DNA of 64,000 bases, from positions 62,001 through 126,000 of IMG/VR virus record IMGVR_UViG_3300035182_002586; one strand, 5' to 3'. Numbering within the stretch: position 1 is the first letter of the stretch; each line of letters starts with the position of its first letter. The notes beneath the pieces were generated by a model. The model saw only the letters and a list, made by a program, of their open reading frames with translations, was not told the DNA's origin and searched no databases. Shown here one piece after another: positions 1,216 through 64,000 of this stretch. The position numbers and the translations under genes are program-made.

Positions 1216-1923
1216 TCAGCGCTTCGCGAGTTGCACCGAGGCGCGTTCCTCCCACCCCTCCAGCTTCGTCATGAGACGGTTGGTGAGGAGGTCGAGTTCT
1301 TCGGTCTTGAGGACTTCGCCTGCGACGGCCAGGACTGACTGCACCCACAGCTTGAAGACCGCCTGGAACTTCTCGCTGTGCAGGTCGAGAAGGTCACCAC
1401 CGAGCTTCTTGATCTCCAGCTCGATGTTCGCGATCTTCGTCAGGGCGTCGATGCGGCGCGTCGAGATCTGCGCGGTGTCCTTGCCGAGCTTCTCGTTCTC
1501 GATGCGCTGGAACTGGAGAGCCGCCGACTCCTTGGCGACTTCTGCCTTCACGAGATGCAGGATCTCCGCTGAGTCCGCCTTGCCGAGGGCAGCCCGCAGG
1601 ATCGGGTCGTTCTGAACGAACTTCTGCTTCTCGTTCGACATCTCCGCGTGGTATTCGAGGTCCGATGTCGTCGGCATCCTCTCGACCTTGCGCGGCCGCC
1701 CACGCTGGCGCGTCACCTTGAGGTCGTTCTTCCCCGTTCGCGGCGCTGCGTGCACCGGAAGAAGACGAAGCACGTTGCCCTCACGGTCATCCGAACCGCC
1801 TTCGGCCTCCCCGGACTCGCCGATCGGGTCTGCGTCGTCGACATCTTGCCCCTCGCCTTCATCGGCGGTGGCCTCGTCGATCACTCGCTCCAGCTCGTCG
1901 TCATGTTCCGCAGACATGCTCAT
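1216..1923 (-). CDS. Probable terminase small subunit / DNA-binding protein
   Basis: Directly upstream of terL; acidic N-terminus, AT-hook-like RGRPRK, helical C-terminus. Confidence 0.5.
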   Translation of the reverse strand: MSMSAEHDDELERVIDEATADEGEGQDVDDADPIGESGEAEGGSDDREGNVLRLLPVHAAPRTGKNDLKVTRQRGRPRKVERMPTTSDLEYHAEMSNEKQKFVQNDPILRAALGKADSAEILHLVKAEVAKESAALQFQRIENEKLGKDTAQISTRRIDALTKIANIELEIKKLGGDLLDLHSEKFQAVFKLWVQSVLAVAGEVLKTEELDLLTNRLMTKLEGWEERASVQLAKR

Positions 1924-2324
1924 TTCTCCTTGACGCCGACTGCTTTGGCGCCACCCCCACCCTGCGTCTCGATGAGATACTGAGAGAGGTTGCTCACAGC
2001 GTCGTACCCCTTGTCCTTGGGGATCTGCTTGTCCAGCGCGTGTGAGAGGTCCTCGCCCGTTTCGACGAGGTTCCGCACTCCCGTGTGCCGGGGTTTCGCG
2101 AGAAACACGTCCTCAGGCCGGACATCGCGACGAGACGGATCGACCGTCTCGTCGGTGGTCTCCACCTGCTTGCCGTTCTCCTTGATGATGTCCTTCGCGA
2201 TCCCCTTCGCGGGGTTCACGGTCTTGACCTCGCGCTTCACGTCCTTGCGCATGTTGGGCGCACGAGGCTTGGCCGCCTCCACCTGGAAGCGAGCAGCGAC
2301 GCGAAGTGCGAGGCTCGTTACCAC
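1920..2324 (-). CDS. Hypothetical virion-associated protein with LRVAARF N-terminal leader
   Basis: Coupled to neighbours; leader motif shared with other ORFs in the window. Confidence 0.6.
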   Translation of the reverse strand: MVTSLALRVAARFQVEAAKPRAPNMRKDVKREVKTVNPAKGIAKDIIKENGKQVETTDETVDPSRRDVRPEDVFLAKPRHTGVRNLVETGEDLSHALDKQIPKDKGYDAVSNLSQYLIETQGGGGAKAVGVKEK

Positions 2325-2327
2325 CCG

Positions 2328-2663
2328 TCACTTCCTTTCGAGGGACTGGTGCATTGAGGAGAGGACCCCGAACTTCTTGGCGATGGGACCGAGATCCGTG
2401 ACGACCGCCTTGAGCGCCATCACCGCCACATCGGGCTTGTCTGCCGTGCGGAGGACGTGGTGCAGGTTGCCGATCACCTCAGCGAGGTCGGACGTGATGT
2501 GATGGAGCTGTTCCCGCACACCCTCTTCCGGCGTGTCCGCATAGGCTGTGGGGTGACTCACGTAGTCACTCATCCCGCGAGCGAACTCCGACGACACGTC
2601 GACGGCACCATACGAGGCCGCCACGGTCTTCCAAGCAGGGTCGTTGAGAGCGATCTTGTCCAT
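2328..2663 (-). CDS. Hypothetical protein (MDKIALNDPAW...)
   Basis: ATG at 2663 follows the stop of the upstream gene; phage-like codon usage. Confidence 0.65.
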   Translation of the reverse strand: MDKIALNDPAWKTVAASYGAVDVSSEFARGMSDYVSHPTAYADTPEEGVREQLHHITSDLAEVIGNLHHVLRTADKPDVAVMALKAVVTDLGPIAKKFGVLSSMHQSLERK

Positions 2664-2668
2664 GATCG

Positions 2669-4936
2669 TCACCCCTTGACTGCCTGGTTGTCGTCGAAGC
2701 TGACGATGATGGGGTCCTGTTGCTTCGGGGCGTCGACTTCGACGACCATCCCGCCGTTCTGCATCTGGTACTCGGCGAGCATCCCCATGCCGCCCGCCAT
2801 GAGGGACTCGTACGAGACCTCCGTGGCCGAGCCCGAGTTGAGGATCGCCGCCTGCTGCGCGGCCTTGTCCACGTACGGAGGCTCCTCCACGAGGGCCTTG
2901 TGGAGCTTCGAGCAGAAGCCCGGACGCGTCTGGTGGACGCAGCTCCCGCACTTCGACCCGGCCTTCACGTACTGGATGACACGAGCGCGGAAGAGCCTGG
3001 CCGGCTCCTCACAGCCCTTACCGTAGTCGTCGTAGACCGTCGGGTCGACGAAGTAGATGCCCTGGAGGCCCTGTTCTGCGAGCACTTCTCGCAGATCCTC
3101 GTTGGCGGCCACGAGGTCGCGCTCGTCGTAGCTGCGGCGGAGAGCATGTGCGAGGTCGTTGCCGTACAGGCCCTCGTTCATGTACTTCGATGCAGTCTTC
3201 ACGATCTCGCGCTTGACGAGGCCCGCCGTCACGTGCTGCGGCGAGTTGCCACGGAACGCCTGCACGGTCTCCATGCGGATACCCGCCTGAGCCGGCGTCG
3301 GCTGGAGCGACGCCCCACGGTACATCGTCTTGAGAGCGTCCTCCGGGGTGCTCCCCAGAACCGAGGCGTTCCGGAGCGTCTGGTCTGCACGACCTGCGAT
3401 CCGGTGGTCCTGGAGAACCGCGTCGGCGGTCTCCCACGTGACCACTTCGGTGGCCTGCTTCGCGAGGGGCTTGCCGTAGAGGAGGCAGCGGCCGATCTTG
3501 TTGTAGACGCAGCCCGAGCACTTCTCGCCAGCCACGACGGCGCGGATACCAGGGTTGTGCTTCGCGATGAAGTCCGACCCCTCGCGGCAGTCCGCGAAGC
3601 TGTCCTGCGTCGTGTAGATCGAACCGTAGAGCCCGGCCTCACGGAAGATCGGCTCCCAGTGCGGACGGGTCTCGTGGAGGTCGGTGAGCGAGAAGGCATA
3701 CTTGAGCGCCTGCCCGAGTTCGACCTCGCTCCGTCCCTTGAGCATCTCGCGACGGAGCAGAGCCACGACTGGAGCTGCCTTGTGCGCGGACATCGCGTAC
3801 TTGGCCGCTTCGTCACGCTTGCGCGTGAGGCTCTCAGCAGCGATGAGCTGGTTGCTCACCGTCTGCGGCGACACGGGGGCGATCGGGGCCTGCGTGCCCG
3901 CACCCACATACGCGTTGCGCGGCGAAGCCACGGCTGCCGTAACAGCCGCCACGACCTGCGCGAGCACGTCTGCGTCCTGCGTTGCTGCGATCGTGCGGAA
4001 CGCGACCTTTGCGTCCGGAACCGAGAGGCGCCCCGAACGAAGGGCGTCGTCGACGGCAGCGTGTGCGGTCTTCTTCTGGCCCGTGAGGTCCGGCGGGAGG
4101 ACGACGGGGGCCGCAGCCACCGTCGGCTTCATGTACTGCGCCGGGTTCACCACAGGCTTCGGAGTCGAGGCTTCCGATCCGTACGAAGCACCTTCCGCGA
4201 GCAGAGCGAGACGGACGCGTTCCTTCGGAGGTGCGTTCGACGCCTGGACCGCCTTGCCCTTCGAGGACTGGACCCGCTCCACCTCTTCGGCGAGGGCCTC
4301 CGAGTAGGGCACCTCGACGACGAGCTGCTTGTGGAAGACCGCGCAGTTGGTGCCGCCGACCGGCCCCTGGAGGGCGTGGGTGCAACCGTGGCACTCCGGC
4401 TTTGCGACGACGAACCGAGCATCGTTCGCGAACTTCCTGACGAAGTTCACGGCCTGCTTCGGGGAGTTGTGGCAACCCGAGAAGTCCGACGCGTCGATGT
4501 AGAGCTTGCCGAGAAGCCCACGCTCTGCGATGAGCGAGGCCAACACCGGGCGAGCTGCTCGCAGCGAGTCGAGGTCGAACCGCTTGACGAGGGCATCGCG
4601 CAACCGAGCGGGGTCCGGCGACTGCATGAGCGCGAGTCGGGCCGTGCGGATGATGTCCTCGGAGGTCGAGCTGATCGGCCCGTGTGCCTGCGAGAGGTCC
4701 CCCATCGTCGCCGGCCGGTGGTCCTTCGGAAGATAGTCCGTTGCCGGACGATCTTCGTGAGCCCACATCGCTTCGAGGTCGGGCGCGATGTTGAGGTTCT
4801 GCTTCGGCAGCACGTCCTGTGCTCGGTACTCGGCGTCATCGACGGCGAGCCACGACACGTCGTTGACGGAACCCTCCTTGGAGGTCGGGATTGCCCCCTC
4901 CTTGAGGAAGTCGGACAGGTCACCGAGATCAGCCAT
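2669..4936 (-). CDS. Large hypothetical head-region protein with three Cys-rich repeat domains
   Basis: Start MADLGDLSDF at 4936; three copies of GLxG-aromatic...C...CxxC...C...K.L. Confidence 0.75.
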   Translation of the reverse strand: MADLGDLSDFLKEGAIPTSKEGSVNDVSWLAVDDAEYRAQDVLPKQNLNIAPDLEAMWAHEDRPATDYLPKDHRPATMGDLSQAHGPISSTSEDIIRTARLALMQSPDPARLRDALVKRFDLDSLRAARPVLASLIAERGLLGKLYIDASDFSGCHNSPKQAVNFVRKFANDARFVVAKPECHGCTHALQGPVGGTNCAVFHKQLVVEVPYSEALAEEVERVQSSKGKAVQASNAPPKERVRLALLAEGASYGSEASTPKPVVNPAQYMKPTVAAAPVVLPPDLTGQKKTAHAAVDDALRSGRLSVPDAKVAFRTIAATQDADVLAQVVAAVTAAVASPRNAYVGAGTQAPIAPVSPQTVSNQLIAAESLTRKRDEAAKYAMSAHKAAPVVALLRREMLKGRSEVELGQALKYAFSLTDLHETRPHWEPIFREAGLYGSIYTTQDSFADCREGSDFIAKHNPGIRAVVAGEKCSGCVYNKIGRCLLYGKPLAKQATEVVTWETADAVLQDHRIAGRADQTLRNASVLGSTPEDALKTMYRGASLQPTPAQAGIRMETVQAFRGNSPQHVTAGLVKREIVKTASKYMNEGLYGNDLAHALRRSYDERDLVAANEDLREVLAEQGLQGIYFVDPTVYDDYGKGCEEPARLFRARVIQYVKAGSKCGSCVHQTRPGFCSKLHKALVEEPPYVDKAAQQAAILNSGSATEVSYESLMAGGMGMLAEYQMQNGGMVVEVDAPKQQDPIIVSFDDNQAVKG

Positions 4937-6701
4937 CTGAGTTCCTCGCGATCGTGGGACGGGGGCGCCCGTAGGTATTGGGCGTATAGTCGTGGACGTC
5001 TTGCTGCCATCGAACGTACGGGGTGTTCGTGTCCTCGTACGTCTGACCGGGGGCGATGGGGGTGTCGCGACCGATCTGCTTCGGGGCGCTCTCCCCATCC
5101 CCCGGCATCTCACTGCCTGCCTGGAAGGGGGTCGTGAAGAGAGGCATGGGACCGCCCGTGACATCCGGGTGTGGCGTGATCGGCGTCGGCTTCGCCGGAG
5201 GCTGCGTGCCCGGCAGCCCCGACTGTGAGTTCACCAGGTTGCCCTTGTCCCCGGGGAAGTAGTCGCTACGTGCAACTGGAGGCTGCATGTCGTTCGGGAG
5301 GATCGCCGTGGCGTCGTCCAGGAAGGCGACGATCGGCCTCGGGGGCTTCCCGTACGGGAACGTCGCGATGAACTCGAAGCCGGGGTTCTCGGCCGCCATC
5401 ACGATGAAGTCGTGGAAGTCCTTCTTCCCTCCGAGGGACGCTTCCAACTGCTTCGCCAGCTCCGAAACCGAGCGTGCGACGACCATCGTGGCTTCACCCT
5501 GGACCGGCTTCGTGTCTGCAAACACGTTGCGGTCACGGAGCTGGACCTCGATGTCCGAACCGTCCGCGCTGGCCGGATCCTTGGTCGGGCCACCGGGGTC
5601 GTGAGGGAGATCCGACGACGGACCCCACACACCCTTGCCCTTGGGGTCCTTGGGGTCCGCCAGCGTGTGCTGGATGCCGTCACCCTTGGCCCCGTACCCG
5701 ATCCCGAAGTCGTTCGCGTCCGTCGGCGTCGTGTCGGTGTTGGTACCCGGCATCGCCGACTCCGCTACGAGCGAGAGCTGCGTCGCGAGCGCGTTGGCTC
5801 GGAGCATGAGCTGCTGAGCCGTGCGTTCGACGAGTTCGTTCTCGTGGTCGCCCGGGTAGTCGTAGTCCCGGGGGCGGTTGTCGTAGCGATCCTGCGAGGG
5901 GTTCTCCCCGCGGTTCCACGACCCCCACGGACCGGGCTGGTCTCCACGATCGAGGTGCTCGACGCGCGGACCTGGAAGTGTCTCGACGGGCAGGGAGGAG
6001 TTCGCCTGCTTGAAGTCCGCCTGGATGTAGGTGTTGGAGGCCGTCTTCTGCTTGTAGCCGGGGAACAGCTCGGCGTTGTTCCCTGTCGGCTGGTCGTTGT
6101 TGAAGGCCGGGAGGGTCTCAGCGTCACCGCCGCCGGGCAGCTCCGAACGCTCCGGGGACTTGTCCTTGTCCTTTCGGACTGCGACCGCTTCCCAGTTCTT
6201 CGCGCTCGGCTTCCCAGCTCCCTCGATGTCCTCGTCCTCCACCTCGTCGAAAGCCTTTTCGGCCTCGTCGACGAAGCGGCTGACATCCTTCTTCTCCCCG
6301 AACGCGAGCTGCGCAAGCCTTGGCTTCCAGTGGGGGGCGTTGATCTCGTCGTGGAGCGTGTCGCAGAGCGAAGAGAGCGACTCGCATGCCTCGTAGAGCC
6401 GCTGACGCAGCTCCTTGACCGGCATGATGTACCCGCGACCGCCGATGTTGCCGTCGGGGCTCACGGTCGCCGACTTCACCCGGGCGAACTGCCGGCAAGC
6501 AGAGAGAGCGTGACCCAAGGCGATGCTCGACTGCCACAGCGTCGCCGCGAGCGGCTTGAGCGCCATGGGGTCGTACTCGTAGTTCTTCGGAATGCTGCGC
6601 TTTGACGGCATCCCGGGAGGTAGCTCCCCTGCCGTTCGCGACATGCCGTCGTCTCCCGGAAGGGAAGCGAGGATCTCCCGCGTTCTTCGCTTGGCGTCCA
6701 A
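4929..6701 (-). CDS. Hypothetical, largely disordered protein (scaffold/head-interior candidate)
   Basis: 590-aa ORF; P/G/D-rich with recurring S-x-[LM]P-G motifs; start uncertain. Confidence 0.7.
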   Translation of the reverse strand: MDAKRRTREILASLPGDDGMSRTAGELPPGMPSKRSIPKNYEYDPMALKPLAATLWQSSIALGHALSACRQFARVKSATVSPDGNIGGRGYIMPVKELRQRLYEACESLSSLCDTLHDEINAPHWKPRLAQLAFGEKKDVSRFVDEAEKAFDEVEDEDIEGAGKPSAKNWEAVAVRKDKDKSPERSELPGGGDAETLPAFNNDQPTGNNAELFPGYKQKTASNTYIQADFKQANSSLPVETLPGPRVEHLDRGDQPGPWGSWNRGENPSQDRYDNRPRDYDYPGDHENELVERTAQQLMLRANALATQLSLVAESAMPGTNTDTTPTDANDFGIGYGAKGDGIQHTLADPKDPKGKGVWGPSSDLPHDPGGPTKDPASADGSDIEVQLRDRNVFADTKPVQGEATMVVARSVSELAKQLEASLGGKKDFHDFIVMAAENPGFEFIATFPYGKPPRPIVAFLDDATAILPNDMQPPVARSDYFPGDKGNLVNSQSGLPGTQPPAKPTPITPHPDVTGGPMPLFTTPFQAGSEMPGDGESAPKQIGRDTPIAPGQTYEDTNTPYVRWQQDVHDYTPNTYGRPRPTIARNSDG

Positions 6702-6712
6702 GGCGTTCTCCC

Positions 6713-7132
6713 TCAGCCCCGAACCGGCTGGCCGTTGTCGTCGAAGAGGCGCTCGATGTAGTAGGTCCCGTCAGCTTCCTTGCCGAGCGACCACAGATCC
6801 CGCTGGCTGCGGTGCACGAGGGTCTCTGCCGACACTCGGTCGAACCCCGCGAGCTGGCGGATGGAGGCGACGCGCGTACGGCCCACCGGAGCCGTAGGGC
6901 GAGCTGACCCCACGACGGGCTTCACGCTGGAGAGCCGGGGGTCCTGTGCGAAGATGGCGTCGATCCCGAGCGTGCTGCCCGACTCCATGGCGCCGAGGTC
7001 GAACCCCTCCGACCCGGAGTCGACACCCTGAAGGATCGGGATACCGACACGTTGACGCGCACCCTTCTCCAGGAAGCCGTCGATGTCCGCCGCCCCGCCA
7101 AGGTCCATGTCTGCGATGTTGAAGTCCGGCAT
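6713..7132 (-). CDS. Hypothetical phage protein (MPDFNIADM...)
   Basis: C-terminal 139 aa of the listed ORF; starts just after the upstream stop. Confidence 0.65.
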   Translation of the reverse strand: MPDFNIADMDLGGAADIDGFLEKGARQRVGIPILQGVDSGSEGFDLGAMESGSTLGIDAIFAQDPRLSSVKPVVGSARPTAPVGRTRVASIRQLAGFDRVSAETLVHRSQRDLWSLGKEADGTYYIERLFDDNGQPVRG

Positions 7133-7143
7133 GTGCTTGTGCC

Positions 7144-8061
7144 TCAGAGGATGGTGAGCTGAACGGTGACGTCGACGTGGTAGTTCAGGGAGTACCCACT
7201 GACGCGAAGGGTCTCTTGGTAGGTCCCAGAGGCCATCCCGTTGATGGGCTCGACGACGACTTGCACGGGCTGTGACCCGCCCGCAGCCACCGTCCCCGAA
7301 GACGGGGTGAACGAGGTCAACCACGAGGAGTAGCTGGTGAGCCTCTGAATGAGGTACTCCAGCACGGACCCACTCGGACCCGAGTTCATGACGAGGAGCT
7401 GCTGGTAGGGGATCGGTGTGAACGACCCGTCCGGCAGCGGCGTCGCAATGAAAGTCAGCGTCACGGGGCTCGTCGCAACGACTGCGCGCGGCCGCACCGT
7501 GATCGCCACCGGAACGACCATGGGACCGTTCGTAGAGTTGGGGTCCTGCACCGTGATCGTCGTCGCGTACGGGCTCTGCACAGCCTGGAGGTTCGTCGAG
7601 TCGACGGAGACCTCCGAGATGCCTGTCTGAGACGTAGCGAGGGGGCCTAGGTTGGCCGGAGCCACGCGCACATACGAATCGTGCGCGGTCAGGGACGGGC
7701 CAAGGATGGAGCCGTATGGCCCGACGTTCGACACCCTCAGGTCGAGGACCGGGGAGAACCCACGGCCTTCGTCGACGCTGAACGAAAGCGACGAGGGAGG
7801 GCCCACAAGGATGGCCGGGGCCAGGGCCGCCTTGATCTCGTCGATCGACGCAGCCATCGCGGACACCACATCGCCTGGGAGAGGGATGCTGTCTCGCAGC
7901 AGCCCGAAGGGCGAAATGATGTCCGTGATCTGATACTGCGGCGTCGCAAGGGTCGTATCGACGCGCGTAGTCCACTTCCAGAGGCCGGCGGGCACCTGGT
8001 ACGAGAACTGGGTCGATTGCGAACGAATGCTTTGGGCGAGGGACACGGGGACCTCACCCAC
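7144..8061 (-). CDS. Putative virion structural protein with tandem Ig-like (BACON-like) domains
   Basis: Beta-strand S/T/V/P-rich repeats (SLSFSVDEG...V.N.G; TLTFIA...VMNSG...SWL...P.SGTVAAG); TTATC motif upstream. Confidence 0.6.
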   Translation of the reverse strand: MGEVPVSLAQSIRSQSTQFSYQVPAGLWKWTTRVDTTLATPQYQITDIISPFGLLRDSIPLPGDVVSAMAASIDEIKAALAPAILVGPPSSLSFSVDEGRGFSPVLDLRVSNVGPYGSILGPSLTAHDSYVRVAPANLGPLATSQTGISEVSVDSTNLQAVQSPYATTITVQDPNSTNGPMVVPVAITVRPRAVVATSPVTLTFIATPLPDGSFTPIPYQQLLVMNSGPSGSVLEYLIQRLTSYSSWLTSFTPSSGTVAAGGSQPVQVVVEPINGMASGTYQETLRVSGYSLNYHVDVTVQLTIL

Positions 8062-8121
8062 GCACGAGATAAAAGGAAAGTAGCGGGTGAAATCTCCGCC
8101 TGGGAGGCTAGAGGGTCCCCT

Positions 8122-8436
8122 TCAACCTTCGCGTGAGGCGTCCCACACGTCCCTTGGCACCCAACAGACGGGGGCGCCGTCACCGCGTCGGATGACTACC
8201 ATCCCGTTCTCGTCGTTCTCGTCCACCAGCTCAGCGTAGTCCCCCGCCTTCGACTCAAAGGGAGGCGTGGAGAGTACCTGCGCGACCTGCGCCCAGTCCG
8301 CAGCGGAGACGAAGGCGACCTCCGCTGCATACGTGATGGCTGCACCGCACGTGCAGACCTTCGGCAGGTCCTCGATCGGGGTAGGGTCTACCCCGAACAG
8401 AACGTCGATGTTCTCGTGCTTGAAGTTGCAGCCCAT
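8122..8436 (-). CDS. Hypothetical protein with Cys motifs
   Basis: ATG 8436 lies 10 nt downstream of a GGTGTA motif. Confidence 0.6.
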   Translation of the reverse strand: MGCNFKHENIDVLFGVDPTPIEDLPKVCTCGAAITYAAEVAFVSAADWAQVAQVLSTPPFESKAGDYAELVDENDENGMVVIRRGDGAPVCWVPRDVWDASREG

Positions 8437-8454
8437 GAGGGGTCCGTACACCAA

Positions 8455-9606
8455 CTAGGCCCACACCTCACCCCTTCGGATCTTGCCGATCAGGGACCGT
8501 GCCACTCCGAATATTTCCGCCAGAGAAGCGTCATTTTCACCTGCGGCCGAACGCGCTCGGATGGAAGCGACCCTTTCCACGTCGAGCTTCCCCGTACGAC
8601 CGGAGGTGCGCCGCGTTCGGTTCTGCTCAGTCCTGGAACCCCAACGACAGTTCGCAGGCCAACCGCGGACCGTGCACTCTGGGCACTTCCCACACGAGTA
8701 GTGGCCGCTCCGGTCGACGCGCAACAACGTGTGCTGCGGAGATGGCTTCACGCCCACGTCTTCAAGGAAGGCGGAGAATTCACCCCTCCACCGCGAGCAC
8801 ATTGTGATGCCGGCCGCGCCGTACTCAGAGAACTTCTCGTGCTTCTCGTTGAAGCATCGGGTCTTGATGCTTGCCCACGTCTTGTACTCTGGTGTCTTGG
8901 TCCCGCCGTGCGCGTAGTTGCCGTGTGCCTCACCTACAGGCACCGGACGGCGATTTAGACTCTGCTCCGCCTTCGACGCCCACCGGACGTTACCGGGTTC
9001 GTAGTTCCCGTTCGGGTTGGGGTAGCGGTCGAGGGAGTAGTCGGGGCCGGGCCTGTGTCCAACATACATGCAGAACGCGATGAAGTCGTTCACCCACGGC
9101 TCGTGGATACGAACGCCTCTACCACCCCACCCCGCATAGTTGCTACTTTTCGGGTTGAGGCAACGGTCTTTCATCGAAATCCAAGCCACATACTCGGGGG
9201 ACTTGATCATCCCGTGCTTGTAGTTCGTTGCCCGCCCGGAAGGTGGCTTGGGCATGCTCGACTTCGGGCGATGGGGGCGTCGATTGTTGTTCTGCTCTTC
9301 GCTGGTAGCCCAACGCAGATTCCCAGGCTCATACCCCCGATCGTTCTCGATTCGATCAAGAGAGTGGCGCAGCGAAGGGCGTGTTCCAACGTGCTCGAAG
9401 AAGGCGGTGAAGTTATTCACCCATCCTTCATAAATCCCGATTCCGCGTCCACCGTAGTCTGAGTACGCTTTATGGCTCGGGTTTAGACACCGAGCCTTGA
9501 TCTGCTGCCAGTAGCGATAAACTTCAGGTGCACTTATCGCCGCCTCTACCAGCCCACTGCGGGAGGCGGACCTCTCTAAGGATGTTGAATTTTTTGCCGC
9601 CGCCAA
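8455..9606 (-). CDS. HNH-like homing endonuclease with three tandem nuclease-like repeats and C-terminal HTH
   Basis: Three copies of Y..W..[IM]K.RC.N.....Y..YG.RGI.....W...F..F...VG.RP....SLDR....G.YEPGN.RW; lower GC than flanks; start uncertain. Confidence 0.75.
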   Translation of the reverse strand: MAAAKNSTSLERSASRSGLVEAAISAPEVYRYWQQIKARCLNPSHKAYSDYGGRGIGIYEGWVNNFTAFFEHVGTRPSLRHSLDRIENDRGYEPGNLRWATSEEQNNNRRPHRPKSSMPKPPSGRATNYKHGMIKSPEYVAWISMKDRCLNPKSSNYAGWGGRGVRIHEPWVNDFIAFCMYVGHRPGPDYSLDRYPNPNGNYEPGNVRWASKAEQSLNRRPVPVGEAHGNYAHGGTKTPEYKTWASIKTRCFNEKHEKFSEYGAAGITMCSRWRGEFSAFLEDVGVKPSPQHTLLRVDRSGHYSCGKCPECTVRGWPANCRWGSRTEQNRTRRTSGRTGKLDVERVASIRARSAAGENDASLAEIFGVARSLIGKIRRGEVWA

Positions 9607-10192: not shown

Positions 10193-12214
10193 TCAAGTTG
10201 TCTTGGCGAAGCCAGCTACCCGTTCCGGATGAAACGTGGGCAGGATGGTATCGCAATCCACATCTTGCAGCCGCGCTAGAGCGGCCTTCCGATCCGGTTT
10301 GGGGTCGATCGTCGTGATCGGCAGGTCGATGCGGAGCGTCATCAGCTCCGCGTTGAGTCTGACCTGTTTCTCCGACGAGCGCATCTTGGCATACTGCGAC
10401 TTCGTGAGTCCCGCCAGGTTTGACGCGAAAATCTTGTCGATCGTACCGTACGCTCGGACAAGCCCGAGAAGAACCTTGCGATCGAACCCTACCCCGGGGA
10501 GCTTGTCCGAAGTATCCCCGTACAGCGCACGCAGAGCCACGATCTGGTCCGGGCCTACCCCCCAGGCTTCCTGGATGGTGTCCGGGTCATGAAAGGTTTC
10601 CTTCGCCTTCCCCACCGCAGGGGTCAGCAAGACATCCGTACGGCTGACCACCTGGAGAAGATCTCGGTCGGTGGAGAAGATAAGGTTCCGCTTCCCCGCC
10701 AAGGGGCCGCGTACGAGGGCCGCGATCACGTCGTCGGCCTCTTCCTCCGGATGGTAGGATTGAGACACACCTAGGAGGGGGAGCGTCTCCTTGATCCACG
10801 TGAGCTGCTCGGGGGTGATGGGGAGCTGCTTGCGGTCGGCTTTGTAGCCCGCGTACGCTGCCTTCCGTCGCCCCGAGGAGCCGTCCCACACAACGTGGAT
10901 GAGGGCGCCGGAGTAGCGCTTGACGAAGCTCCCGAGGCTCCTCAGGAACCCCGTGTAGATGCCGGAGGGTCTACCCTTCGAGTCCCTCAGCTCCGAGAGG
11001 CCGGGGGCGTACGCACACCTTGCTGCGAGGTTCAGGCCGTCCACCACTACATGGTCGATCGTCCCGTGAGGGGCCGTCGCAGGGTCCGGCTCTGGAAACG
11101 ACGGATTGTGGTCCATGTCGATCTCCAGGACGGCGCTCATGCTTTCCTCGATCAAACGGACCTCCTCCCCGATCGCTTCCAGGCGACCCACTGCATCCTT
11201 GAGCCAGAGCCACTCCATAGCGCGCTCGTCGACACGAGCACGGGATGGTGGAGTGTAGAACACGTTCACGAATGAATACAAGGGGGTCCAGCGAGACTCC
11301 CATGAGGCCAGACGCCCCAACGTCTTGGTGCGTTCACTCAGATCTACCAGAGAGGCTGCACTGACTTGCCGCGTCACCCTGGAAACAACAGGCTCGGTGG
11401 CCTGCCACTTGGACAGCCAGGACGCCACCCTCTTGAGGACGACGGCCTTCATGGAGAGGGGCTTGGGGTCGAACTTCGTGTAACCGAGGGCCTGGACGAA
11501 CCCGTAGAGGGCCTGCCACTTGGGCACCCACACCGACAAGCGCCGGTGGGCTTCAGCCGGACGGAGCAGTTTGGCCCCGTTGTTTCTCCACAAGAGGACG
11601 GGGCGCATGGACCTGAGCCAAGCGAGAGCTTCCGCCATGCGGCGCTCCACGGCGGGCTTCGGAGCCTTGGTGACGAGCTGGAGGAAGTTGCGGGGGAGGG
11701 TGACGATCGCTTCCTTGGAGCGGAGCTTCACGAGCACCTGCACCTGCGAAAGCTCTTGGATGTCCTCGTGGACAATGGCCTGAATCTGTCGGTAGGGCCC
11801 CGACATGATCAGTACAGTGTCACCCACAGAAATGCCTTGTTCACTCTCTTGGCTGACTTGCGCCTTCATTCGACGCACTTGCGCGTCGGTGGCCAAGGCC
11901 AGCTTGCCGTTACGCTGTAGAACGGCCGCTACATACCGAGTGTTCGCAAGACGTACGTAGACCTGATCCGGGTGCGTCTTCTTGACGAACGCGTACCCAT
12001 CGAATGCGTACCGAACTACCTTGTCCTGCCCTACGGTCGTCACCGCCGCAGGGACGAACACTTCGGCATCCCGGATAGAGCCTCGAATGGACCGGCGGAT
12101 GAGATCGGGATCCTCGCCTTCCGCCTTTGGGCCTAGTTCGAGGATCACCCACTGGTCAGCCACCGCCACCACCGGCCCCCGGCCAGGTACGTTCAAACTC
12201 CCTACGCCAGGCAT
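10193..12214 (-). CDS. Fusion of NusG/RfaH-like (NGN+KOW) domain and 5'-3' exonuclease/flap endonuclease (PolI N-terminal type)
   Basis: N-term WVIL...VFVP...FDGYAFV...VGDTVLIMSGPY; C-term VVDGLN, VVWDG, YKADR, EADDVIA, STDRDLLQ, GDTSDKLPGV. True start probably a GTG near 12160-12172. Confidence 0.8.
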   Translation of the reverse strand: MPGVGSLNVPGRGPVVAVADQWVILELGPKAEGEDPDLIRRSIRGSIRDAEVFVPAAVTTVGQDKVVRYAFDGYAFVKKTHPDQVYVRLANTRYVAAVLQRNGKLALATDAQVRRMKAQVSQESEQGISVGDTVLIMSGPYRQIQAIVHEDIQELSQVQVLVKLRSKEAIVTLPRNFLQLVTKAPKPAVERRMAEALAWLRSMRPVLLWRNNGAKLLRPAEAHRRLSVWVPKWQALYGFVQALGYTKFDPKPLSMKAVVLKRVASWLSKWQATEPVVSRVTRQVSAASLVDLSERTKTLGRLASWESRWTPLYSFVNVFYTPPSRARVDERAMEWLWLKDAVGRLEAIGEEVRLIEESMSAVLEIDMDHNPSFPEPDPATAPHGTIDHVVVDGLNLAARCAYAPGLSELRDSKGRPSGIYTGFLRSLGSFVKRYSGALIHVVWDGSSGRRKAAYAGYKADRKQLPITPEQLTWIKETLPLLGVSQSYHPEEEADDVIAALVRGPLAGKRNLIFSTDRDLLQVVSRTDVLLTPAVGKAKETFHDPDTIQEAWGVGPDQIVALRALYGDTSDKLPGVGFDRKVLLGLVRAYGTIDKIFASNLAGLTKSQYAKMRSSEKQVRLNAELMTLRIDLPITTIDPKPDRKAALARLQDVDCDTILPTFHPERVAGFAKTT

Positions 12215-23096: not shown

Positions 23097-24029
23097 CTAG
23101 AGGACCGAAACACCCCGGAACTTCTTCAAGTGCTCCGGGATCTCGGGCTTCAGCTCCGGAGGCGCCCCCGACATCACCGCCTCGAAGTTCTCCAACACTC
23201 CGGGCTTGGCCATCGAGGTCATCCCGAAGTTGGAAAGGGCGAACAGCTCGGCGAACGATTCCCCGTCGTTGATGCTGTACTTCGTCGTGTGCCACTCGGC
23301 CCGGTCGAAGTCCACCTTGAGGTGGTGTTTCGCCTCGTATCTATGACCAAGCTCGTGGGTCACCACGTAGCTGAAGCCACCGTAGCCCGACCCGGCCCGC
23401 TCGATGCGCCCGCCAACCGTCGCGCGGATCCAGAGGATGTCCCCCTCCCGCCCGTACTTCCCGCTCGCCGTCCCACGGAAGTCCTTGGGCCCCGCCAGGT
23501 GGACTTTGATCCCACCGGAGAGCGCTCCTCGGTGCCACCCCTTCAAGCCGGCGAAGATGCCCTCCATCTCCGCGATCATGGCGTCCAGCTTCTCATCGTT
23601 GACGCCGACCATGTTGACGTAGGTGTTACCCCCGACCTTCTTCTCTCGGGTGAGAGCCTTCGCACCCCCCTCCACCGAAGAGAACGCCGACACCCAGGCG
23701 GGGACCAACGCCTTCATTCGCTGGTCTTCCCACAGCGAGCGAATCGAGTTTGTCAGGGCGCCAGGAAGGTAGTGCTCGTAGTACTCTACGTCCCTCTCGA
23801 TGGAACGATAGAACCGGTCCAGCTCTTCCTTCTCCCGCTTCATCCCCTTGGGCGTGTAGCGCGTCTGGAAGTGGAAGTTGTGCACGATCCACTTTGCGAA
23901 CTCCTGAAGCTCGTGCTTCGGAGGCTTCTCCGGGTCGTAGGACAGCAACTTGTCGACCTTCGACACGAAGTCGTGTTCGAGAGACGCTGCCTGGAAGCGC
24001 CGCGCCACCTTGATCGCGAGAGGGTCCAT
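23097..24029 (-). CDS. Zincin-type metallopeptidase with KVARRF leader
   Basis: VTHELGH plus downstream ESFAELF; ATG 24029. Confidence 0.7.
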   Translation of the reverse strand: MDPLAIKVARRFQAASLEHDFVSKVDKLLSYDPEKPPKHELQEFAKWIVHNFHFQTRYTPKGMKREKEELDRFYRSIERDVEYYEHYLPGALTNSIRSLWEDQRMKALVPAWVSAFSSVEGGAKALTREKKVGGNTYVNMVGVNDEKLDAMIAEMEGIFAGLKGWHRGALSGGIKVHLAGPKDFRGTASGKYGREGDILWIRATVGGRIERAGSGYGGFSYVVTHELGHRYEAKHHLKVDFDRAEWHTTKYSINDGESFAELFALSNFGMTSMAKPGVLENFEAVMSGAPPELKPEIPEHLKKFRGVSVL

Positions 24030-24092
24030 CACACGTGTAGGTAGATAAGCAGAACCATCGACAAGAGCCCGGTGGCCGGTGTATTTCGGGGT

Positions 24093-27304: not shown

Positions 27305-27775
27305 TCACTTCTTCAAGCCTGCGATCGCGGTGTGGAAGAGCTGGATGGCGAGCGTCCCGTGGCCCTTCATGTGGGGCGTCTCCCAGTTCTTCGGGTCGGG
27401 GAGCTTCATCGCGTCGGTGATGAGGGCGATGGTCGCCCCAAGGTCGTTCGCGAGGCGGTGGTGGTCGACCTGACGGCCTTCGAGCCAGAGGTTGAACGGG
27501 CCGCGCCAGCTCTTGCTCTGCTGGTCGATCTTGCGGGCGAGCTTGAAGAGTTGCCGGCCCATCTTCTCCAGCTTGGGATCGACGGGATCTTCCTGAAGGT
27601 CGGCCATCGTCGAGCCGACGTTCTCCGCCGTCTTGACGAACTCCTCCATCGCGTCCCACCCGTTCGAGAGGGCTTCCTTCACGGGGTCGCCGTGCGCGGA
27701 AGGACGTGAGAGAGCCGTACGCTGGTCGTACGAATAGCGCGCGGTCGAGGGGCGGTGGTCGTAGGAGTAGGACAT
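27305..27775 (-). CDS. Hypothetical protein with duplicated YSYDxR leader
   Basis: MSYSYDHRPSTARYSYDQRTA. Confidence 0.65.
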   Translation of the reverse strand: MSYSYDHRPSTARYSYDQRTALSRPSAHGDPVKEALSNGWDAMEEFVKTAENVGSTMADLQEDPVDPKLEKMGRQLFKLARKIDQQSKSWRGPFNLWLEGRQVDHHRLANDLGATIALITDAMKLPDPKNWETPHMKGHGTLAIQLFHTAIAGLKK

Positions 27776-27803
27776 CCTGTACTCCCTCGACACAAGAGGA
27801 AAG

Positions 27804-34967: not shown

Positions 34968-34998
34968 ATCCTCTTGTGCCGTGGGGTTTTTGGACCCT

Positions 34999-35535: not shown

Positions 35536-35573
35536 CCGTGTACTTATCGTGACGTGTAGGGGAGAGGTGCCTG

Positions 35574-51530: not shown

Positions 51531-52110
51531 GCCGCTCTTCCCGTCTACGCCACGTCCGAATGTGATGGCAGTTCGCGCAGACAAGCTCGCACTTCGCGAC
51601 TTCGGCCTGGAGGACTGCCATCGAGTACGCACGGTTCTTCATGCGAGCGATGTCCATCACCTTCCCGGACTTCACATGATCGAACTGCATCGCAGCGTGG
51701 TGGAACGTACCCCCACAGTCTGTGCAGGGCTTTGATTTCAACTCGCGGATGAACGCTCGTTGCTCATCTCGAACGCGGGAAGCTCGTTTCTTCGAGCGTT
51801 CCATCTGCTCTCCCTTGTGACGGGCGTACCAGGCTCGCCGGTAGGGACGAAGGCAGATCGTACAGGTTCGCTGGTACTTCCCCTTGGCCTTGTTGGCGAC
51901 AGGAAAATCCCCCAAGGGCTTCCATTCCTTGCATCGCCAGCATCGTCGCAAGCCAGGGTTCGCGGTGCTTTGGGTAGAACACGTCGGCCGTTTGTGCCCT
52001 GCCTGCCCGCACAACCCGCACTTCTGGTGGGGCCCAGGCTCTAAGGTCTTCGTTTGATAGTTCACACCGAACACGGTGTATAAGAGATTTAGGAAAGCAA
52101 AGGTTCCCAT
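51469..52110 (-). CDS. HNH endonuclease with N-terminal zinc knuckle
   Basis: CGLCGQAGHKRPTC; CTDCG...FDHV...KCELVCANCH; start uncertain. Confidence 0.8.
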   Translation of the reverse strand: MGTFAFLNLLYTVFGVNYQTKTLEPGPHQKCGLCGQAGHKRPTCSTQSTANPGLRRCWRCKEWKPLGDFPVANKAKGKYQRTCTICLRPYRRAWYARHKGEQMERSKKRASRVRDEQRAFIRELKSKPCTDCGGTFHHAAMQFDHVKSGKVMDIARMKNRAYSMAVLQAEVAKCELVCANCHHIRTWRRREERLKPPSTPVPPTGSGSPPPSP

Positions 52111-53596
52111 GCCCTCGAACGACCCCGTTTCCGCTGCTTACGCTGCTGTCTCGCTTTTCAGCGTTCGTGCGAAGCCCGAAGTGGTTCTCCCTCTGCTTGG
52201 TGCGTTGGGGGATAAGGCTCTCCTGGAGCGTTTCGGAGGGCTTTTCGGCAAGCAGAAGTACTCGGATTTCATGGCGGAGACGAAAGCCGCGTCGTTCGAC
52301 CCGAAGCTCCGTCTCATCAAGGGGTACGATCCGAACGCCCTGCCTCGGGACGACGCGTTCACCGTCCTCGACATGCTCCGCCTGCTCGCGTCCGACGAGG
52401 ACAACAAGGTCCTCCTCGACCACGAAGCGTTCAAGTACAGCCGCATCTCACGCGGGCGCGTCGACGCGTTCACCGTCCTCACGGCGGACGAGCAGGCGGA
52501 GGTCGAGCGCCTCACCGAGGAGCTGACCAAGGCCAAGAAGGATGCCAAGAAGGTCGCCGAGCTGAGCGCGAAGATCGCGGCCATCTCCAACAAGCCTGCG
52601 CCGCTCAAGTTCGAGGCGGACCCGGCGCCCGACGGCTACTCGGTCTCCAACCTCACGTACAACGAGGAGCACCCGAACGTCAGCCTGCTCGTCCGCAAGA
52701 CCGGTACGGTCGACATCTCAGGCCGTCTCCCGGCGGAGATCACCGGCGTCCCGGCCAAGTTCCCGACGTTCATCTTCCGCAACTACGCAGTGGTGAAGGA
52801 TGGGCTCGTCAACGTCGAGGTCCTCCCGACCAAGCTCTCAGCGGCGACGCTCGCGAAGCTCTTCGAGCTGCACAAGGCGGGGAAGTTCTCCGACGAGGTG
52901 GTGAAGTCGGACGGCAACGTCGTCCTCCTCAACTTCAAGTCGCTGCCGGTCATCAACCGCACGATGGTGAAGGCGACGTCGGCGAAGGCCCTCTTCGAGA
53001 ATGAGTGGGCGCTCACGCGCATCCAGGCCGAGCAGAAGGTCTACAAGTCGTTCGCCAAGGAGAAGTTCGGGACCAAGAAGTCCGCGGGCTTCGAGGAGAC
53101 GTACGGTAAGGCGGCGGCCGACTGGCTCAAGGAGCAGGGCTTCACCGACTACTCGGGCTTCTCGCCGAAGAGTGTCCAGGCCGAGTCGACCGACGTGTAC
53201 GTCGCCAAGGAGCTGTCGATCGTGATCAAGGGCTTCTCAGCGATCCCGAGCCTCAACGACTTCAAGAAGCAGGCGGCGAAGGGGAAGTTCACCCCGTCGG
53301 CGCAGCTCATGAAGGACGCGGCCGATGCCGTCGAGAAGTTCCTCGCTTCCGACGACTACAAGAACGGCGGCGACCCGGCGTTCGAGAAGTGGCTCAAGGA
53401 CAAGGACAAGGCGCTCGACAAGACGCGCCGCGCCCTCATCGCCAACAAGGCGCAGCAGATCTTCTGCGTGGTAGTAGGTCAGACGTGGCCGGTGGAGTTC
53501 GCGTCAATCGACGAAACGCAGTTGAAGATCACCACTCCGGAGGGTAACGTCCTGGAGTGCGAAGTGAAGATGCGAGATCGCGAGATCAAGATCTAA
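52109..53596 (+). CDS. Hypothetical protein, probable C-terminal partner of the vWA gene
   Basis: Same strand and codon style as 50661-51530; own GGTGTA motif at ~52075. Confidence 0.7.
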   Translation: MPSNDPVSAAYAAVSLFSVRAKPEVVLPLLGALGDKALLERFGGLFGKQKYSDFMAETKAASFDPKLRLIKGYDPNALPRDDAFTVLDMLRLLASDEDNKVLLDHEAFKYSRISRGRVDAFTVLTADEQAEVERLTEELTKAKKDAKKVAELSAKIAAISNKPAPLKFEADPAPDGYSVSNLTYNEEHPNVSLLVRKTGTVDISGRLPAEITGVPAKFPTFIFRNYAVVKDGLVNVEVLPTKLSAATLAKLFELHKAGKFSDEVVKSDGNVVLLNFKSLPVINRTMVKATSAKALFENEWALTRIQAEQKVYKSFAKEKFGTKKSAGFEETYGKAAADWLKEQGFTDYSGFSPKSVQAESTDVYVAKELSIVIKGFSAIPSLNDFKKQAAKGKFTPSAQLMKDAADAVEKFLASDDYKNGGDPAFEKWLKDKDKALDKTRRALIANKAQQIFCVVVGQTWPVEFASIDETQLKITTPEGNVLECEVKMRDREIKI

Positions 53597-60501: not shown

Positions 60502-60508
60502 GTAAGAG

Positions 60509-61253: not shown

Positions 61254-61327
61254 GCTCCCGTGGCCGAGTGGTTCAGGCGGGCGACTTTAAATCGCCGTCA
61301 ACGTGGGTTCGAGTCCCACCGGGGGCG
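61254..61327 (+). tRNA. Ochre suppressor tRNA, anticodon TTA at 61287-61289
   Basis: Full cloverleaf: GCTCCCG/CGGGGGC, GCC-GAGTGGTTCA-GGC, GGCGA-CTTTAAA-TCGCC, GTGGG-TTCGAGT-CCCAC; discriminator G; no encoded CCA. Confidence 0.85.
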
Positions 61328-61857: not shown

Positions 61858-61895
61858 CGAGTTTAGTGGCGGTATAAATGACCTACTAAACTCGA
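61857..61895. repeat. 11-bp-arm inverted repeat at the start of the HNH gene
   Basis: tcgagtttagt-N17-actaaactcga. Confidence 0.75.
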
Positions 61896-61923
61896 CCCTC
61901 TCGATCAGGTGTACCATCCCCCC

Positions 61924-62274: not shown

Positions 62275-62275
62275 C

Positions 62276-62902
62276 TCAGTGGTAGTCGTAGCGAAGACCG
62301 AGCTGATCCCACTCGTGCGTCAGCTCTTGCATCGTCATGTTCGCGGCCTTGGAGATGTTGTCCTTGAGCCAGCCGTAGAACAGGATGCCGTCCTTCTTGC
62401 TCACGGGTGAGTAGAGGGTGTCCTGACGGTAGCCGTGGGCCGCCTTGCCGGGCGCCTCGATGACGGTGCTGTTGGTCACGTGGAAGTCGTGCGGGCTCGC
62501 CTGGATGCGGACGATGGTGCCGTCCGGGAACTTCTTCTCCAGCTTGATGGTGGTCCCCGGCGGCTCGACGTCGATCCCACGGAGTTCCCGCTCGTGGGTC
62601 TCCATCAGCTCCGGGTGGTCCGCCTTGATCTTCTCCAGGTGTGACTTCGCCTGGTCGTAGTTCATGTGCAGGATGGAGGTGACCGCCTGCTTGAGGATCC
62701 GGTCCGCCATCTCGTCGTTGAGCGTGTGCGGCATCACCGTCAGCTCACGGACCTTCTTGCCCCGCTTGCCGGCATTCGTCATGTCGGTGATCCGAACGCT
62801 CCCGTGGAAGCGGTGGATCTTGAGGTGCTCGGTGAAGGCGTGTTGCCCCACGTCCAGGCTGGCGGCAAGGAACTTGGCAGCGACTCGGCGGGCGAGGTCC
62901 AT
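62276..62902 (-). CDS. Hypothetical protein with RVAAKF leader
   Basis: MDLARRVAAKFLAAS; TTATC 13 nt upstream. Confidence 0.7.
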   Translation of the reverse strand: MDLARRVAAKFLAASLDVGQHAFTEHLKIHRFHGSVRITDMTNAGKRGKKVRELTVMPHTLNDEMADRILKQAVTSILHMNYDQAKSHLEKIKADHPELMETHERELRGIDVEPPGTTIKLEKKFPDGTIVRIQASPHDFHVTNSTVIEAPGKAAHGYRQDTLYSPVSKKDGILFYGWLKDNISKAANMTMQELTHEWDQLGLRYDYH

Positions 62903-62925
62903 GCCCACACCCCGTGATAAGACCT

Positions 62926-63222
62926 CTATCGCCCTACGCTGACCAGGGCGTCGTCGATCTGGTCCGGGTCCAAGCGGAAAGGACCCGGACCCCCTGCCCC
63001 GGGAGCCCAACCGGCCAGGACCCCTCGCCGGACCAGGGCCTCCACCTCGGTCGTTCCGATGGCGTCACATCGACGTACATCCACCGTGGCCACGAGGCAG
63101 CGCCCCGGGAACGCCTCCACCTCGATCGTCACGTTGAGACAGGGGGCCGCCCTCTTGGTGACCAGGAAGCGGTAGGAGGTGGTGTCGACGGTCAACCGCC
63201 GGCTGTGGTTAGGCAGGGTCAT
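62926..63222 (-). CDS. Hypothetical protein
   Basis: GGTGTA 11 nt upstream. Confidence 0.6.
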   Translation of the reverse strand: MTLPNHSRRLTVDTTSYRFLVTKRAAPCLNVTIEVEAFPGRCLVATVDVRRCDAIGTTEVEALVRRGVLAGWAPGAGGPGPFRLDPDQIDDALVSVGR

Positions 63223-63233
63223 GCCCTAGCTAC

Positions 63234-63246
63234 TACACCTTTTATC
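63234..63246. promoter_or_regulatory. Divergent GGTGTA (minus) and TTATC (plus) motifs
   Basis: tacacc-tt-ttatc between two divergent genes. Confidence 0.55.
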
Positions 63247-63261
63247 GCCCCCGCAGGGGTG

Positions 63262-63600
63262 ATGGCCTACTCCTACGACCACCGGACCCGCACCGCTGCC
63301 TTCAACATCTCGAAGGTGGTCATGGACATCGACGTTGACCTCTACCCCGAGAAGCTCTCCTGGACCTCAAGTGGGAAGGTCCTCATGACGGGGGTGGCCG
63401 AGTTCGTTCTCCCCAACCGCAAGCACAAGAGCAAGCCCTACGAGCTGGAGACCTCCGAAGACGGTACGGTCCAGCAGTGCAAGTGCGAAGACCCTATGCA
63501 TCGACAGATGATCTGGATCGCCGCAGACAAGCGCAAGCGCGAGCTGGCCGAGCTGATCGAGGACCAGAAGCAGCGGGGCGGGCTCCGTCGCAAGCCCTGA
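63262..63600 (+). CDS. Hypothetical protein with YSYDHRTRTA leader
   Basis: TTATC 15 nt upstream. Confidence 0.65.
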   Translation: MAYSYDHRTRTAAFNISKVVMDIDVDLYPEKLSWTSSGKVLMTGVAEFVLPNRKHKSKPYELETSEDGTVQQCKCEDPMHRQMIWIAADKRKRELAELIEDQKQRGGLRRKP

Positions 63601-64000
63601 TCAAACCCGGTTGATGTAGCGGCTGACGACTCTGTGGGCGATCGTGGCGTTTTTCGGGCGCGTGCTGGCCTTGCCGAGCGCCTCTATCGCCTGCTGGAAG
63701 TCGTCCGGTACCTTCCACGCGTTCTCGTTGGGGAACCCGTGACCAACCCCGTACTGGTCTAGCAGGGCCCGGACTGTCTTCACGGAACGGTCGATCTGTG
63801 CGACTGCCTCCGCTTCGACTTTGCCCTTGAAGGGGGTGTAGAAGTCTTTGAACGAGATCACCTGCTGGTGGGCGTCGCTGTACTGCTCCGCGATGTCGAA
63901 GGGGATGGCCATCCCCTCGTTCGTGTAGAGGAGCGTCATGAGCTTCGCCGACTCGGCGTACAGCTTGATGAACATCGCCGTGTAGTCGTGGGCGGCTACG
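63601..64000 (-). CDS. Hypothetical protein, 5' end probably outside the window; C-terminal IAHRVVSRY motif
   Basis: Frame open to the window edge. Confidence 0.6.
   Translation of the reverse strand, partial: VAAHDYTAMFIKLYAESAKLMTLLYTNEGMAIPFDIAEQYSDAHQQVISFKDFYTPFKGKVEAEAVAQIDRSVKTVRALLDQYGVGHGFPNENAWKVPDDFQQAIEALGKASTRPKNATIAHRVVSRYINRV

Follow-up and report, generated by a model that had tools for sequence, protein, structure and literature searches.

We analysed a 64,000-nucleotide stretch of DNA (the window), which spans bases 62,001-126,000 of a 528,957-bp IMG/VR virus record from an uncultivated huge phage, and find two short peptides, here termed tag A and tag B, at the ends of about 20 otherwise unrelated proteins per genome. 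These peptides are very probably genuine modular docking tags that are employed clade-wide and from either protein terminus. Their destination is a more tentative matter: we infer that the tagged proteins are quite possibly bound for the procapsid or capsid, to be packaged there and injected with the DNA. In the mechanism we propose, the tags would act as short portable peptides that dock their proteins on a conserved component of the assembling procapsid; the docked proteins would then be enclosed in the head and delivered together with the DNA. The leading candidate for the receptor would be the HK97-fold capsid protein, followed by a Gln-rich scaffold-like protein or the prohead protease. 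The cargo would amount to a kit of early-acting enzymes, comprising four zincin peptidases, a topoisomerase IB, a 2H phosphoesterase, a J-domain protein and a Dps-like protein, along with small proteins without assigned function.

Two terminal peptides on unrelated proteins

Tag A has the aligned consensus M-x-x-L-A-x-R-V-A-x-R-F, commonly followed by L-A-A-S and with F or Y at its last position; as a pattern it can be written [L/A]-x-[RK]-V-[AVL]-x-[RK]-[FY]. It is of the basic amphipathic helix type and is conserved residue by residue; read from the alignment, its hydrophobic L, V and F are spaced four residues apart (i, i+4, i+8), with two basic residues beside them. Tag B reads Y-x-Y-D-[HQR]-R. 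Among the 700 proteins called with our own codon-bias model, a crude call that covers 85% of the genome and on which all protein counts given here depend, the pattern [RK]V[AVLMIT].[RK][FY] occurs 27 times where 3.7 copies are expected from composition. Fourteen copies, on 13 proteins, lie within the first 25 residues against 3.1 expected at random (P = 4e-7), with six more in the last 25 residues and seven internal. The tag B pattern Y.YD.R is found five times in the called proteome against 0.44 expected, always at a terminus: four copies occupy the N-termini of three proteins, one of them as a tandem pair, and the fifth makes up the six C-terminal residues of a Dps/ferritin-like protein. Scans of all six frames are independent of the gene call, and a position-specific scoring matrix (PSSM) built from the tags gave 12 such matches above 26 bits, every one of them 3-19 codons past the start codon of a long open reading frame (ORF), as against a maximum of 15 bits in the reversed genome. 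Weaker PSSM and pattern matches comprise further N-terminal copies (MPIRVLDRY, MTSQRVLARY) as well as C-terminal ones.

An earlier note on this DNA had pointed to two families of shared leader peptides in the window, and six-frame translation confirms all six of the peptides it listed, each where the note had placed it. The proteome-wide motif search likewise bears out their enrichment at termini. Their reach, however, is wider than the note supposed, in that the tags occur throughout the genome rather than specifically in the window, are found at C-termini too and, in some proteins, stand in tandem or on both ends.

The carriers are modular and come from several different families, save for four distant zincin paralogs. 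Stripped of their first 30 residues, they show no mutual BLASTP similarity; they range from 89 to 435 aa in length, none has more than one recognized enzyme domain in Pfam or PHROG, and searches of these two collections returned nothing for most of them. Those that can be named are a topoisomerase IB (Pfam Topoisom_I, 1e-28) with tags on both ends, the J-domain protein and a LigT/2H phosphoesterase, each with a C-terminal tag, and the Dps/ferritin-like protein with its C-terminal tag B; the phosphoesterase has a clear family match and, in addition, a sub-threshold match to the anti-CBASS protein Acb1. One further carrier, g_53206, combines an A tag with a following B-like HYRYDEG and, although without a family match, shows a ParB-like DGxHR motif by eye. 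The assertion that the protein bodies are unrelated thus holds for most carriers but not for four A-tagged proteins, which have in common a distant HExxH...FAExF zincin body. No Pfam family matches these zincin carriers above threshold, Peptidase_Mx remaining below its cut-off.

Judged from aligned sequences, orthologs gain, lose, duplicate and relocate tags between termini, and exchange A for B. More than 40 of 107 peptidase homologs begin with a tag of the MDPLAxRVAxRF type at identities as low as ~40%, and more distant homologs have a different N-terminal domain in its place. Individual homologs depart from this arrangement: one (P0071) has no N-terminal tag and carries DRVASRF at its C-terminus, one (P0049) has two tag copies, one (P0029) has a B-like HSYDRR just upstream of the A-tag site, and two (P0026, P0101) are fused to 2H/Acb1 and NUDIX domains. 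Nearly all of the best 120 topoisomerase IB homologs have an N-terminal RVAA[RK]Y, many with a second copy upstream. Among the 100 whose core end could be located, a variable linker of 8-20 residues joins the core to a C-terminal A tag in about 50, a B tag (e.g. GYTYDRR) takes the same type of C-terminal position in six, and the remainder end just past the conserved core. The swap of A for B at equivalent positions, together with the presence of tags at either end in orthologs, means that A and B are interchangeable and that either terminus serves. As a separate observation, five topoisomerase homologs (P0109, P0110, P0129, P0138, P0142) have Cys/Gly-rich stretches of the CGCAGDCGGACSCGGGCSC type between the core and the terminal tag.

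The signal lies at the level of protein rather than nucleic acid. At the conserved Arg, Val and Ala of the tags all synonymous codons are used, and the tags survive in an IMG/VR relative (G005) with 53% GC, 11 points from the 64% that is uniform along the whole of our record, and a median protein identity to it of 49%. This free variation of synonymous codons, taken with the survival of the tags at so different a composition, points to a protein-level signal, and we reject a nucleotide-level one on the grounds of the codon variation. At N-termini G005 has at least 13 A tags and two B tags, and at C-termini one of either type. Its carriers are orthologous to those of our genome only in part; both the Dps-like protein and the 2H enzyme have untagged orthologs there, that of the former terminating in KTASDPW. 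The modular tag system envisaged by the earlier note is thereby upheld, as the PSSM, the codons, the orthologs and G005 describe tags that are terminal, transferable, selected as protein and clade-wide.

Predicted structures are consistent with tags that stand free of the folded bodies. In the AlphaFold model of the topoisomerase, the core has a predicted local distance difference test (pLDDT) score >90, the N-terminal helix (residues 2-23) scores 62-65, and the helix of the C-terminal tag (276-290), at 54-69, comes after a disordered linker, a geometry that in the model has the look of a tethered docking helix. The peptidase copy from the window is modeled at pLDDT 90 with its tag as the free start of a long helix. 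The nearest solved folds to this model are PPEP-1/Zmp1 and anthrax lethal factor, both zincins, with weak E-values of ~1e-2, so that a zincin fold of the peptidase is weakly supported. A prediction of the complex of capsid protein, scaffold-like protein and tag reached 0.26 against a mark of 0.32; as a single run without controls, it counts neither way.

Destination of the tagged proteins

Three indirect lines point to the head as the destination: a promoter-like motif shared with structural genes, the co-occurrence of tags with a capsid protein, and a tagged head-module protein in one relative. The PSSM profile finds 4-9 matches in each of five IMG/VR relatives (363-512 kb), eight in a 257-kb fragment and four in an uncultured 485-kb GenBank record, whereas it finds none in three IMG/VR fragments (127-222 kb) that encode untagged peptidase homologs and none in the cultured phage PaBG. 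One and the same HK97-type capsid protein is present in all eight tag-bearing records and was not found in the three tag-less IMG/VR fragments, which are 42-69% complete; PaBG was left out of this check. A search for related loci with a single protein as query gave nothing, and an alignment query was required.

The head module lies at 343-354 kb of the genome and hence outside the window, where the earlier note had placed a head region. Pfam and PHROG hold nothing for the proteins at 1216-9420 that it took for head proteins, and those at 2328-6644 have no family match. The capsid gene (genome 343027-343959(-), locus L072) matches PHROG 2522 of the HK97 family at 4e-53, and its call begins 19 codons too early, judged from homologs. 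Between the protease and capsid genes, a scaffold-like protein of 503 aa (genome 344771-346282(-), locus L058) has strong codon bias and a central stretch of ~250 residues that is nearly all Gln/Ala repeats (QQAQQAQQ), and is presumably the scaffold. Also encoded in the module are a protein of 209 aa, a prohead protease of 555 aa (PHROG 18299) and two small proteins (247 and 133 aa), after which comes a protein of 1403 aa, its gene lying upstream of the protease gene. An ESM Atlas look-up of the 1403-aa protein gave no lead, and its ortholog in G005 begins MPRRVARRF. Two features of the capsid protein recall the tags, perhaps by coincidence: residues 176-184 in one alignment (A3) are an invariant HDLRVARIY, like tag A but one residue out of register, and the N-terminal helix has KTAAGRAKLAAS, reminiscent of the K-F-L-A-A-S of the tags.

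The capsid protein is the most conserved protein between our genome and G005: its identity is 92%, that of the runner-up 77% and the median 49%. It is 92-93% identical in five relatives, where its neighbors in the head module are 30-65% identical, and it has more than 2000 database homologs, with 84-100% identity among the 120 listed. A tag that hardly varies across divergent genomes would call for a partner that hardly varies either, and the conserved capsid protein would fit this role. Going further, the HK97-fold capsid protein might itself be where tag A docks, perhaps with a separate site for tag B, in the manner of an encapsulin, which would make the capsid a programmable delivery container. 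We consider this specific form of the idea rather unlikely. Any protein would then enter the host by gaining a 10-residue tag at either end, and the capsid protein would be frozen at ~92%, against ~49% for the proteome, because some 20 types of cargo must be served.

Regulation also links part of the tagged genes to genes of the virion. A promoter-like motif, (A/T)TCCTCTT[AG]T[CG], ends 13-45 nt, mostly 13-16 nt, before start codons. In a relaxed form it precedes 49 of the 700 genes, among them 12 of the 24 genes counted as tagged and 37 of the 676 others (odds ratio 17, P = 5e-9). The other genes that bear it include those for the scaffold-like protein, the 1403-aa head-module protein, a GH25 lysozyme and a staphylococcal-nuclease homolog, several proteins with beta-rich C-termini, and three genes of the baseplate region, one of which adjoins a baseplate-wedge homolog. 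On the sense strand the motif looks like an anti-Shine-Dalgarno sequence and not a ribosome-binding site, and its distance of just 13-45 nt from start codons implies very short or absent mRNA leaders. In G005 a related CTTGTA motif stands before several tagged genes. The tagged genes are thus partly co-regulated with virion genes, which fits joint expression, the temporal class being what we infer from the annotated members. The product of a window gene at 31299-32480(+), which weakly matches an RNA polymerase sigma factor (PHROG 1740, 1e-4), is a candidate reader of the motif.

Several observations weigh against a head destination. The link between tags and capsid is a correlation at the level of the clade and may merely mirror shared ancestry. 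In our genome three tagged genes are found 3-8 kb away from the capsid gene, but four of the five relatives, in which the core head module showed no tagged gene, lack such clustering, so that proximity of genes carries little weight. The promoter-like motif is missing from half of the tagged genes, and to call it 'late' depends on few annotated genes. No receptor for the tags was found, and inspection of about 26 tags revealed no consistent protease site after them. Cultured relatives were sought by tblastn with the topoisomerase, which returned only the uncultured 485-kb record and distant jumbo phages, and no cultured relative of the clade was found.

As for the cleavage by a prohead protease that the earlier note considered, no common motif for it follows the tags. 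The [RK][TV]A string that the note saw recurring in head-region proteins fares poorly: KTA occurs 72 times genome-wide against 48 expected, or 1.5-fold, with no enrichment at termini, and we reject it as a cleavage motif. KTA-like junctions do recur beside tags, with FVKTAS ahead of the C-terminal tags of topoisomerases and KTAS ahead of that of the Dps-like protein, and in head proteins, where the capsid protein has IKTAAG and the scaffold-like one VKTAD. A junction K-x-[AS]-[AST], defined post hoc, precedes five of the seven C-terminal tags in our genome; in independent sets it does badly, with at most one of the three C-terminal tags of G005 and about 20 of 53 topoisomerase homologs showing it. 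The residues past N-terminal tags prolong an Ala-rich helix. A third shared N-terminal string, PAWKT[AV], occurs on two small proteins encoded at 2328-2672(-) of the window and at genome 362036-362449(-) (locus L097), as NDPAWKTVAAS and HPAWKTASDPKTAS.

The same tags could instead dock their proteins on a hub other than the capsid, encoded by phage or host, such as a chaperone system, an AAA+ unfoldase or protease adaptor that sets when they are destroyed, a factory for replication or repair, or a further compartment built by the phage. That one carrier is a J-domain protein would agree with a chaperone system; topoisomerase IB and the Dps-like protein work on DNA. Terminal placement at either end and flexible linkers are also typical of hub-binding and degradation motifs, and the analysis found no capsid receptor. 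Conversely, the replication proteins looked at (helicases, a UvsX-like recombinase, the clamp loader) are neither tagged nor motif-bearing; the promoter-like motif, common to tagged and structural genes, precedes none of the identified replication genes. The tags are unlike the known clamp, SSB and ClpX motifs, and the weak sigma-factor-like match hints at use of the host RNA polymerase and not at a sealed phage nucleus. We regard a non-capsid hub as possible but doubtful.

Less probable still is that the tags bind each other, A to A or A to B, and so assemble a non-covalent multi-enzyme particle that is perhaps then packaged and that would parallel the giant 'polyvalent' effector proteins, except that its parts are not fused. 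Zincin peptidases, a type of domain typical of polyvalent proteins (PMC5512222), are found among the cargo, tandem tags and tags on both ends would suit cross-linking, and A and B co-occur in g_53206. A 9-14-residue Ala-rich helix is, however, short for stable self-association, and that orthologs swap A for B at matching positions points to like roles for the two and not to complementary ones; we therefore deem this arrangement improbable.

Two further explanations have little left to them. The peptide could be no tag at all, and instead the remnant of a duplicated N-terminal domain or a nucleotide signal at start codons, as four carriers are distant paralogs of one zincin family and many tags begin at the initiator Met with a conserved MDPLA; but the carriers comprise well-known unrelated folds, the tag occurs at C-termini too and shifts between termini among orthologs, and it persists from 64% to 53% GC with varying synonymous codons, so that this explanation is largely refuted and seems very improbable. 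An export signal of the Tat or Sec type, which copies reading RRF might recall through their likeness to the twin-arginine motif, is scarcely credible, since the tag sequences have no hydrophobic core after the motif, no A-x-A site and a spacing unlike S/T-R-R-x-F-L-K or its core R-R-x-F-L-K, are not confined to the N-terminus as such signals are, and sit on cargo (topoisomerase, J-domain protein) that is cytoplasmic in nature.

Relation to known systems

The capsid-targeting sequence (CTS) of phage T4 is the closest functional parallel to a head destination of the tags. It consists of 10 N-terminal residues common to unrelated internal proteins and suffices to package foreign proteins; it is cut off by the prohead protease, and Alt is processed at both ends (PMC9026906). 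Like the CTS of IPI-III and Alt, the tags are short terminal peptides on unrelated proteins. In contrast to it, they are unrelated in sequence and are found C-terminally and in tandem as well, the L/I-x-E site is not seen after them, and a Glu past the tag in the peptidase family is not conserved. The capsid protein here is of the HK97 type (PHROG 2522), the protease belongs to PHROG 18299, and packaging itself would be by analogy. No match to the T4-type prohead protease and capsid protein (PF03420 and PF07068; gp21 and gp23) was found in the genome. The system is therefore not a member of the T4 class, failing on position, cleavage motif, and protease and capsid families, and the T4 precedent invoked by the earlier note carries over in outline and not in detail.

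Encapsulins load their cargo through short terminal peptides, present on unrelated enzymes including ferritin-like ones, that dock inside an HK97-fold shell. The tags resemble these in being terminal, in occurring alongside a highly conserved HK97-fold shell protein, and in having one Dps/ferritin-like carrier. In our phage, however, the shell is a DNA-filled capsid and docking is a candidate mechanism, and the tag consensus L-A-x-R-V-A-x-R-F has no likeness to the encapsulin consensus of the GSL or LTVGSL type. The encapsulation peptides of bacterial microcompartments are amphipathic helices at N- or C-termini on a poorly conserved linker, and are conserved in pattern only. Here, too, an amphipathic terminal helix sits on a flexible linker at either terminus, but tag A is conserved residue by residue. 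In HK97, the C-terminal tail of the prohead protease directs that protein into the procapsid, a device of a single protein as opposed to the shared tag described here; the 555-aa protease of our genome has a different conserved C-terminus.

In polyvalent proteins the zincin metallopeptidase is the commonest domain and acts as a hub, and these proteins have been proposed to be packaged and injected as early effectors (PMC5512222). The domain repertoire of the tagged cargo appears to overlap with theirs (Iyer et al. 2017), zincin-like peptidases included; the difference is that separate small tagged proteins take the place of one giant multidomain fusion. In the literature we found no paper containing RVAARF and none describing such a tag.

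Metagenomes are nearly the sole source of what is known of huge phages (350-600 kb), the majority of whose genes lack an assigned function. Through a shared tag, about 20 of these genes in each genome, on hundreds of contigs, fall into a single functional class for which one common interaction is predicted; the tag is also a simple search key for such effectors in metagenomes. If the capsid is indeed the destination, the tags would extend protein packaging by a defined sequence signal beyond T4, in a widespread form that can operate at either terminus, and would link phage heads to encapsulin-style cargo loading. They would also name enzymes that are delivered at infection (topoisomerase IB, 2H phosphoesterase, zincin peptidases and J-domain protein), a set relevant to the biology of counter-defence.

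Tagged genes of the window and other loci

Six tagged genes lie wholly or partly in the window. The first (1920-2324(-)), which starts MVTSLALRVAARF at a GTG codon, encodes a basic protein of 134 aa (pI 9.5) without a family match, with tag A as MVTSLALRVAARFQVEAA at its N-terminus (2271..2324(-), PSSM 35 bits); orthologs in two relatives (L116, L121) retain the tag. It belongs to a minus-strand gene run at whose upstream end a promoter-like motif stands, upstream of 8046. The zincin-like peptidase gene (23097-24029(-)), source of the peptide MDPLAIKVARRF, encodes 310 aa with the HExxH of a zincin-like metallopeptidase; its N-terminal tag A, MDPLAIKVARRFQAAS (23976..24029(-)), is supported by six-frame translation, PSSM and alignment, and within it R11, A15 and L17 are nearly invariant across 31 aligned orthologs with identities as low as 39%. 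The promoter-like motif CTGCTTATC (24044..24052(-)) stands 14 nt ahead of the start codon. A 156-aa cargo protein (27305-27775(-)) without a family match begins with two tandem copies of tag B, MSYSYDHRPSTARYSYDQRTA (27713..27775(-), six-frame translation), and its gene has the motif CCTCTTGTG (27791..27799(-)) 15 nt ahead of the start codon.

The remaining three are close together at the end of the window. A cargo gene at 62276-62902(-) encodes 208 aa starting MDLARRVAAKF, with tag A as MDLARRVAAKFLAAS (62849..62902(-), six-frame translation and PSSM) and the motif GGTCTTATC (62916..62924(-)) 13 nt ahead of its start codon; the protein has no family match and an ESM Atlas look-up gave no lead, and its ortholog in one relative (G001, L124) retains a tag, MRVVARY. 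On the opposite strand, the motif CCTTTTATC (63238..63246(+)) lies 15 nt ahead of the start codon of a cargo gene for 112 aa (63262-63600(+)), without a family match, which begins with tag B as MAYSYDHRTRTAA (63262..63300(+), six-frame translation). Next to it is the 3' part of the J-domain protein gene (63601..64000(-)), which encodes 343 aa from a start at 64632, past the window end; it closes with a C-terminal tag A, TIAHRVVSRYINRV, followed by the stop codon (63601..63645(-), six-frame translation, peptide IAHRVVSRYINRV). This protein matches Pfam DnaJ at E = 2.9e-6, with 27.7 bits against a cut-off of 27.8, and PHROG 13942. Further promoter-like motif sites in the window are at 8068-8076(-), 34970-34978(+) and 35540-35548(+).

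Among the other genes of the window, those at 10193-13685(-) are replication genes, for an exonuclease-like protein (PHROG 107) and a clamp loader (PHROG 5846, 2e-52). An ORF of 1811 aa (17028-22463(+)) has a short N-terminal PHROG match (23630) and is otherwise unannotated. Two genes, at 44389-46107(+) and 52109-53596(+), match different parts of PHROG 2426 and came under suspicion of encoding a capsid protein or a terminase; the second encodes neither, its product being a homolog (30-33% identity) of a vWA-domain protein from Klebsiella and Vi1-like myophages. When 8 kb of the window were compared with GenBank phages by megablast, no DNA similarity to known phages emerged, and near-identical DNA is present in sediment, microbial-mat, groundwater and hot-spring metagenomes.

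Elsewhere in the genome, a 1422-aa protein (355848-360116(-), L079) has by eye a sheath-like N-terminus, SYVPPGVYT, and a 1153-aa protein (251835-255296(-), L087) is a baseplate-wedge homolog (PHROG 6), which together suggest, from their sequences, a contractile tail. A 337-aa protein without a family match (362461-363474(-), L094) is 67% identical in G005 and has, again by eye, an actin/Hsp70-like N-terminal phosphate-binding motif, GLDVGTMNLVSA.

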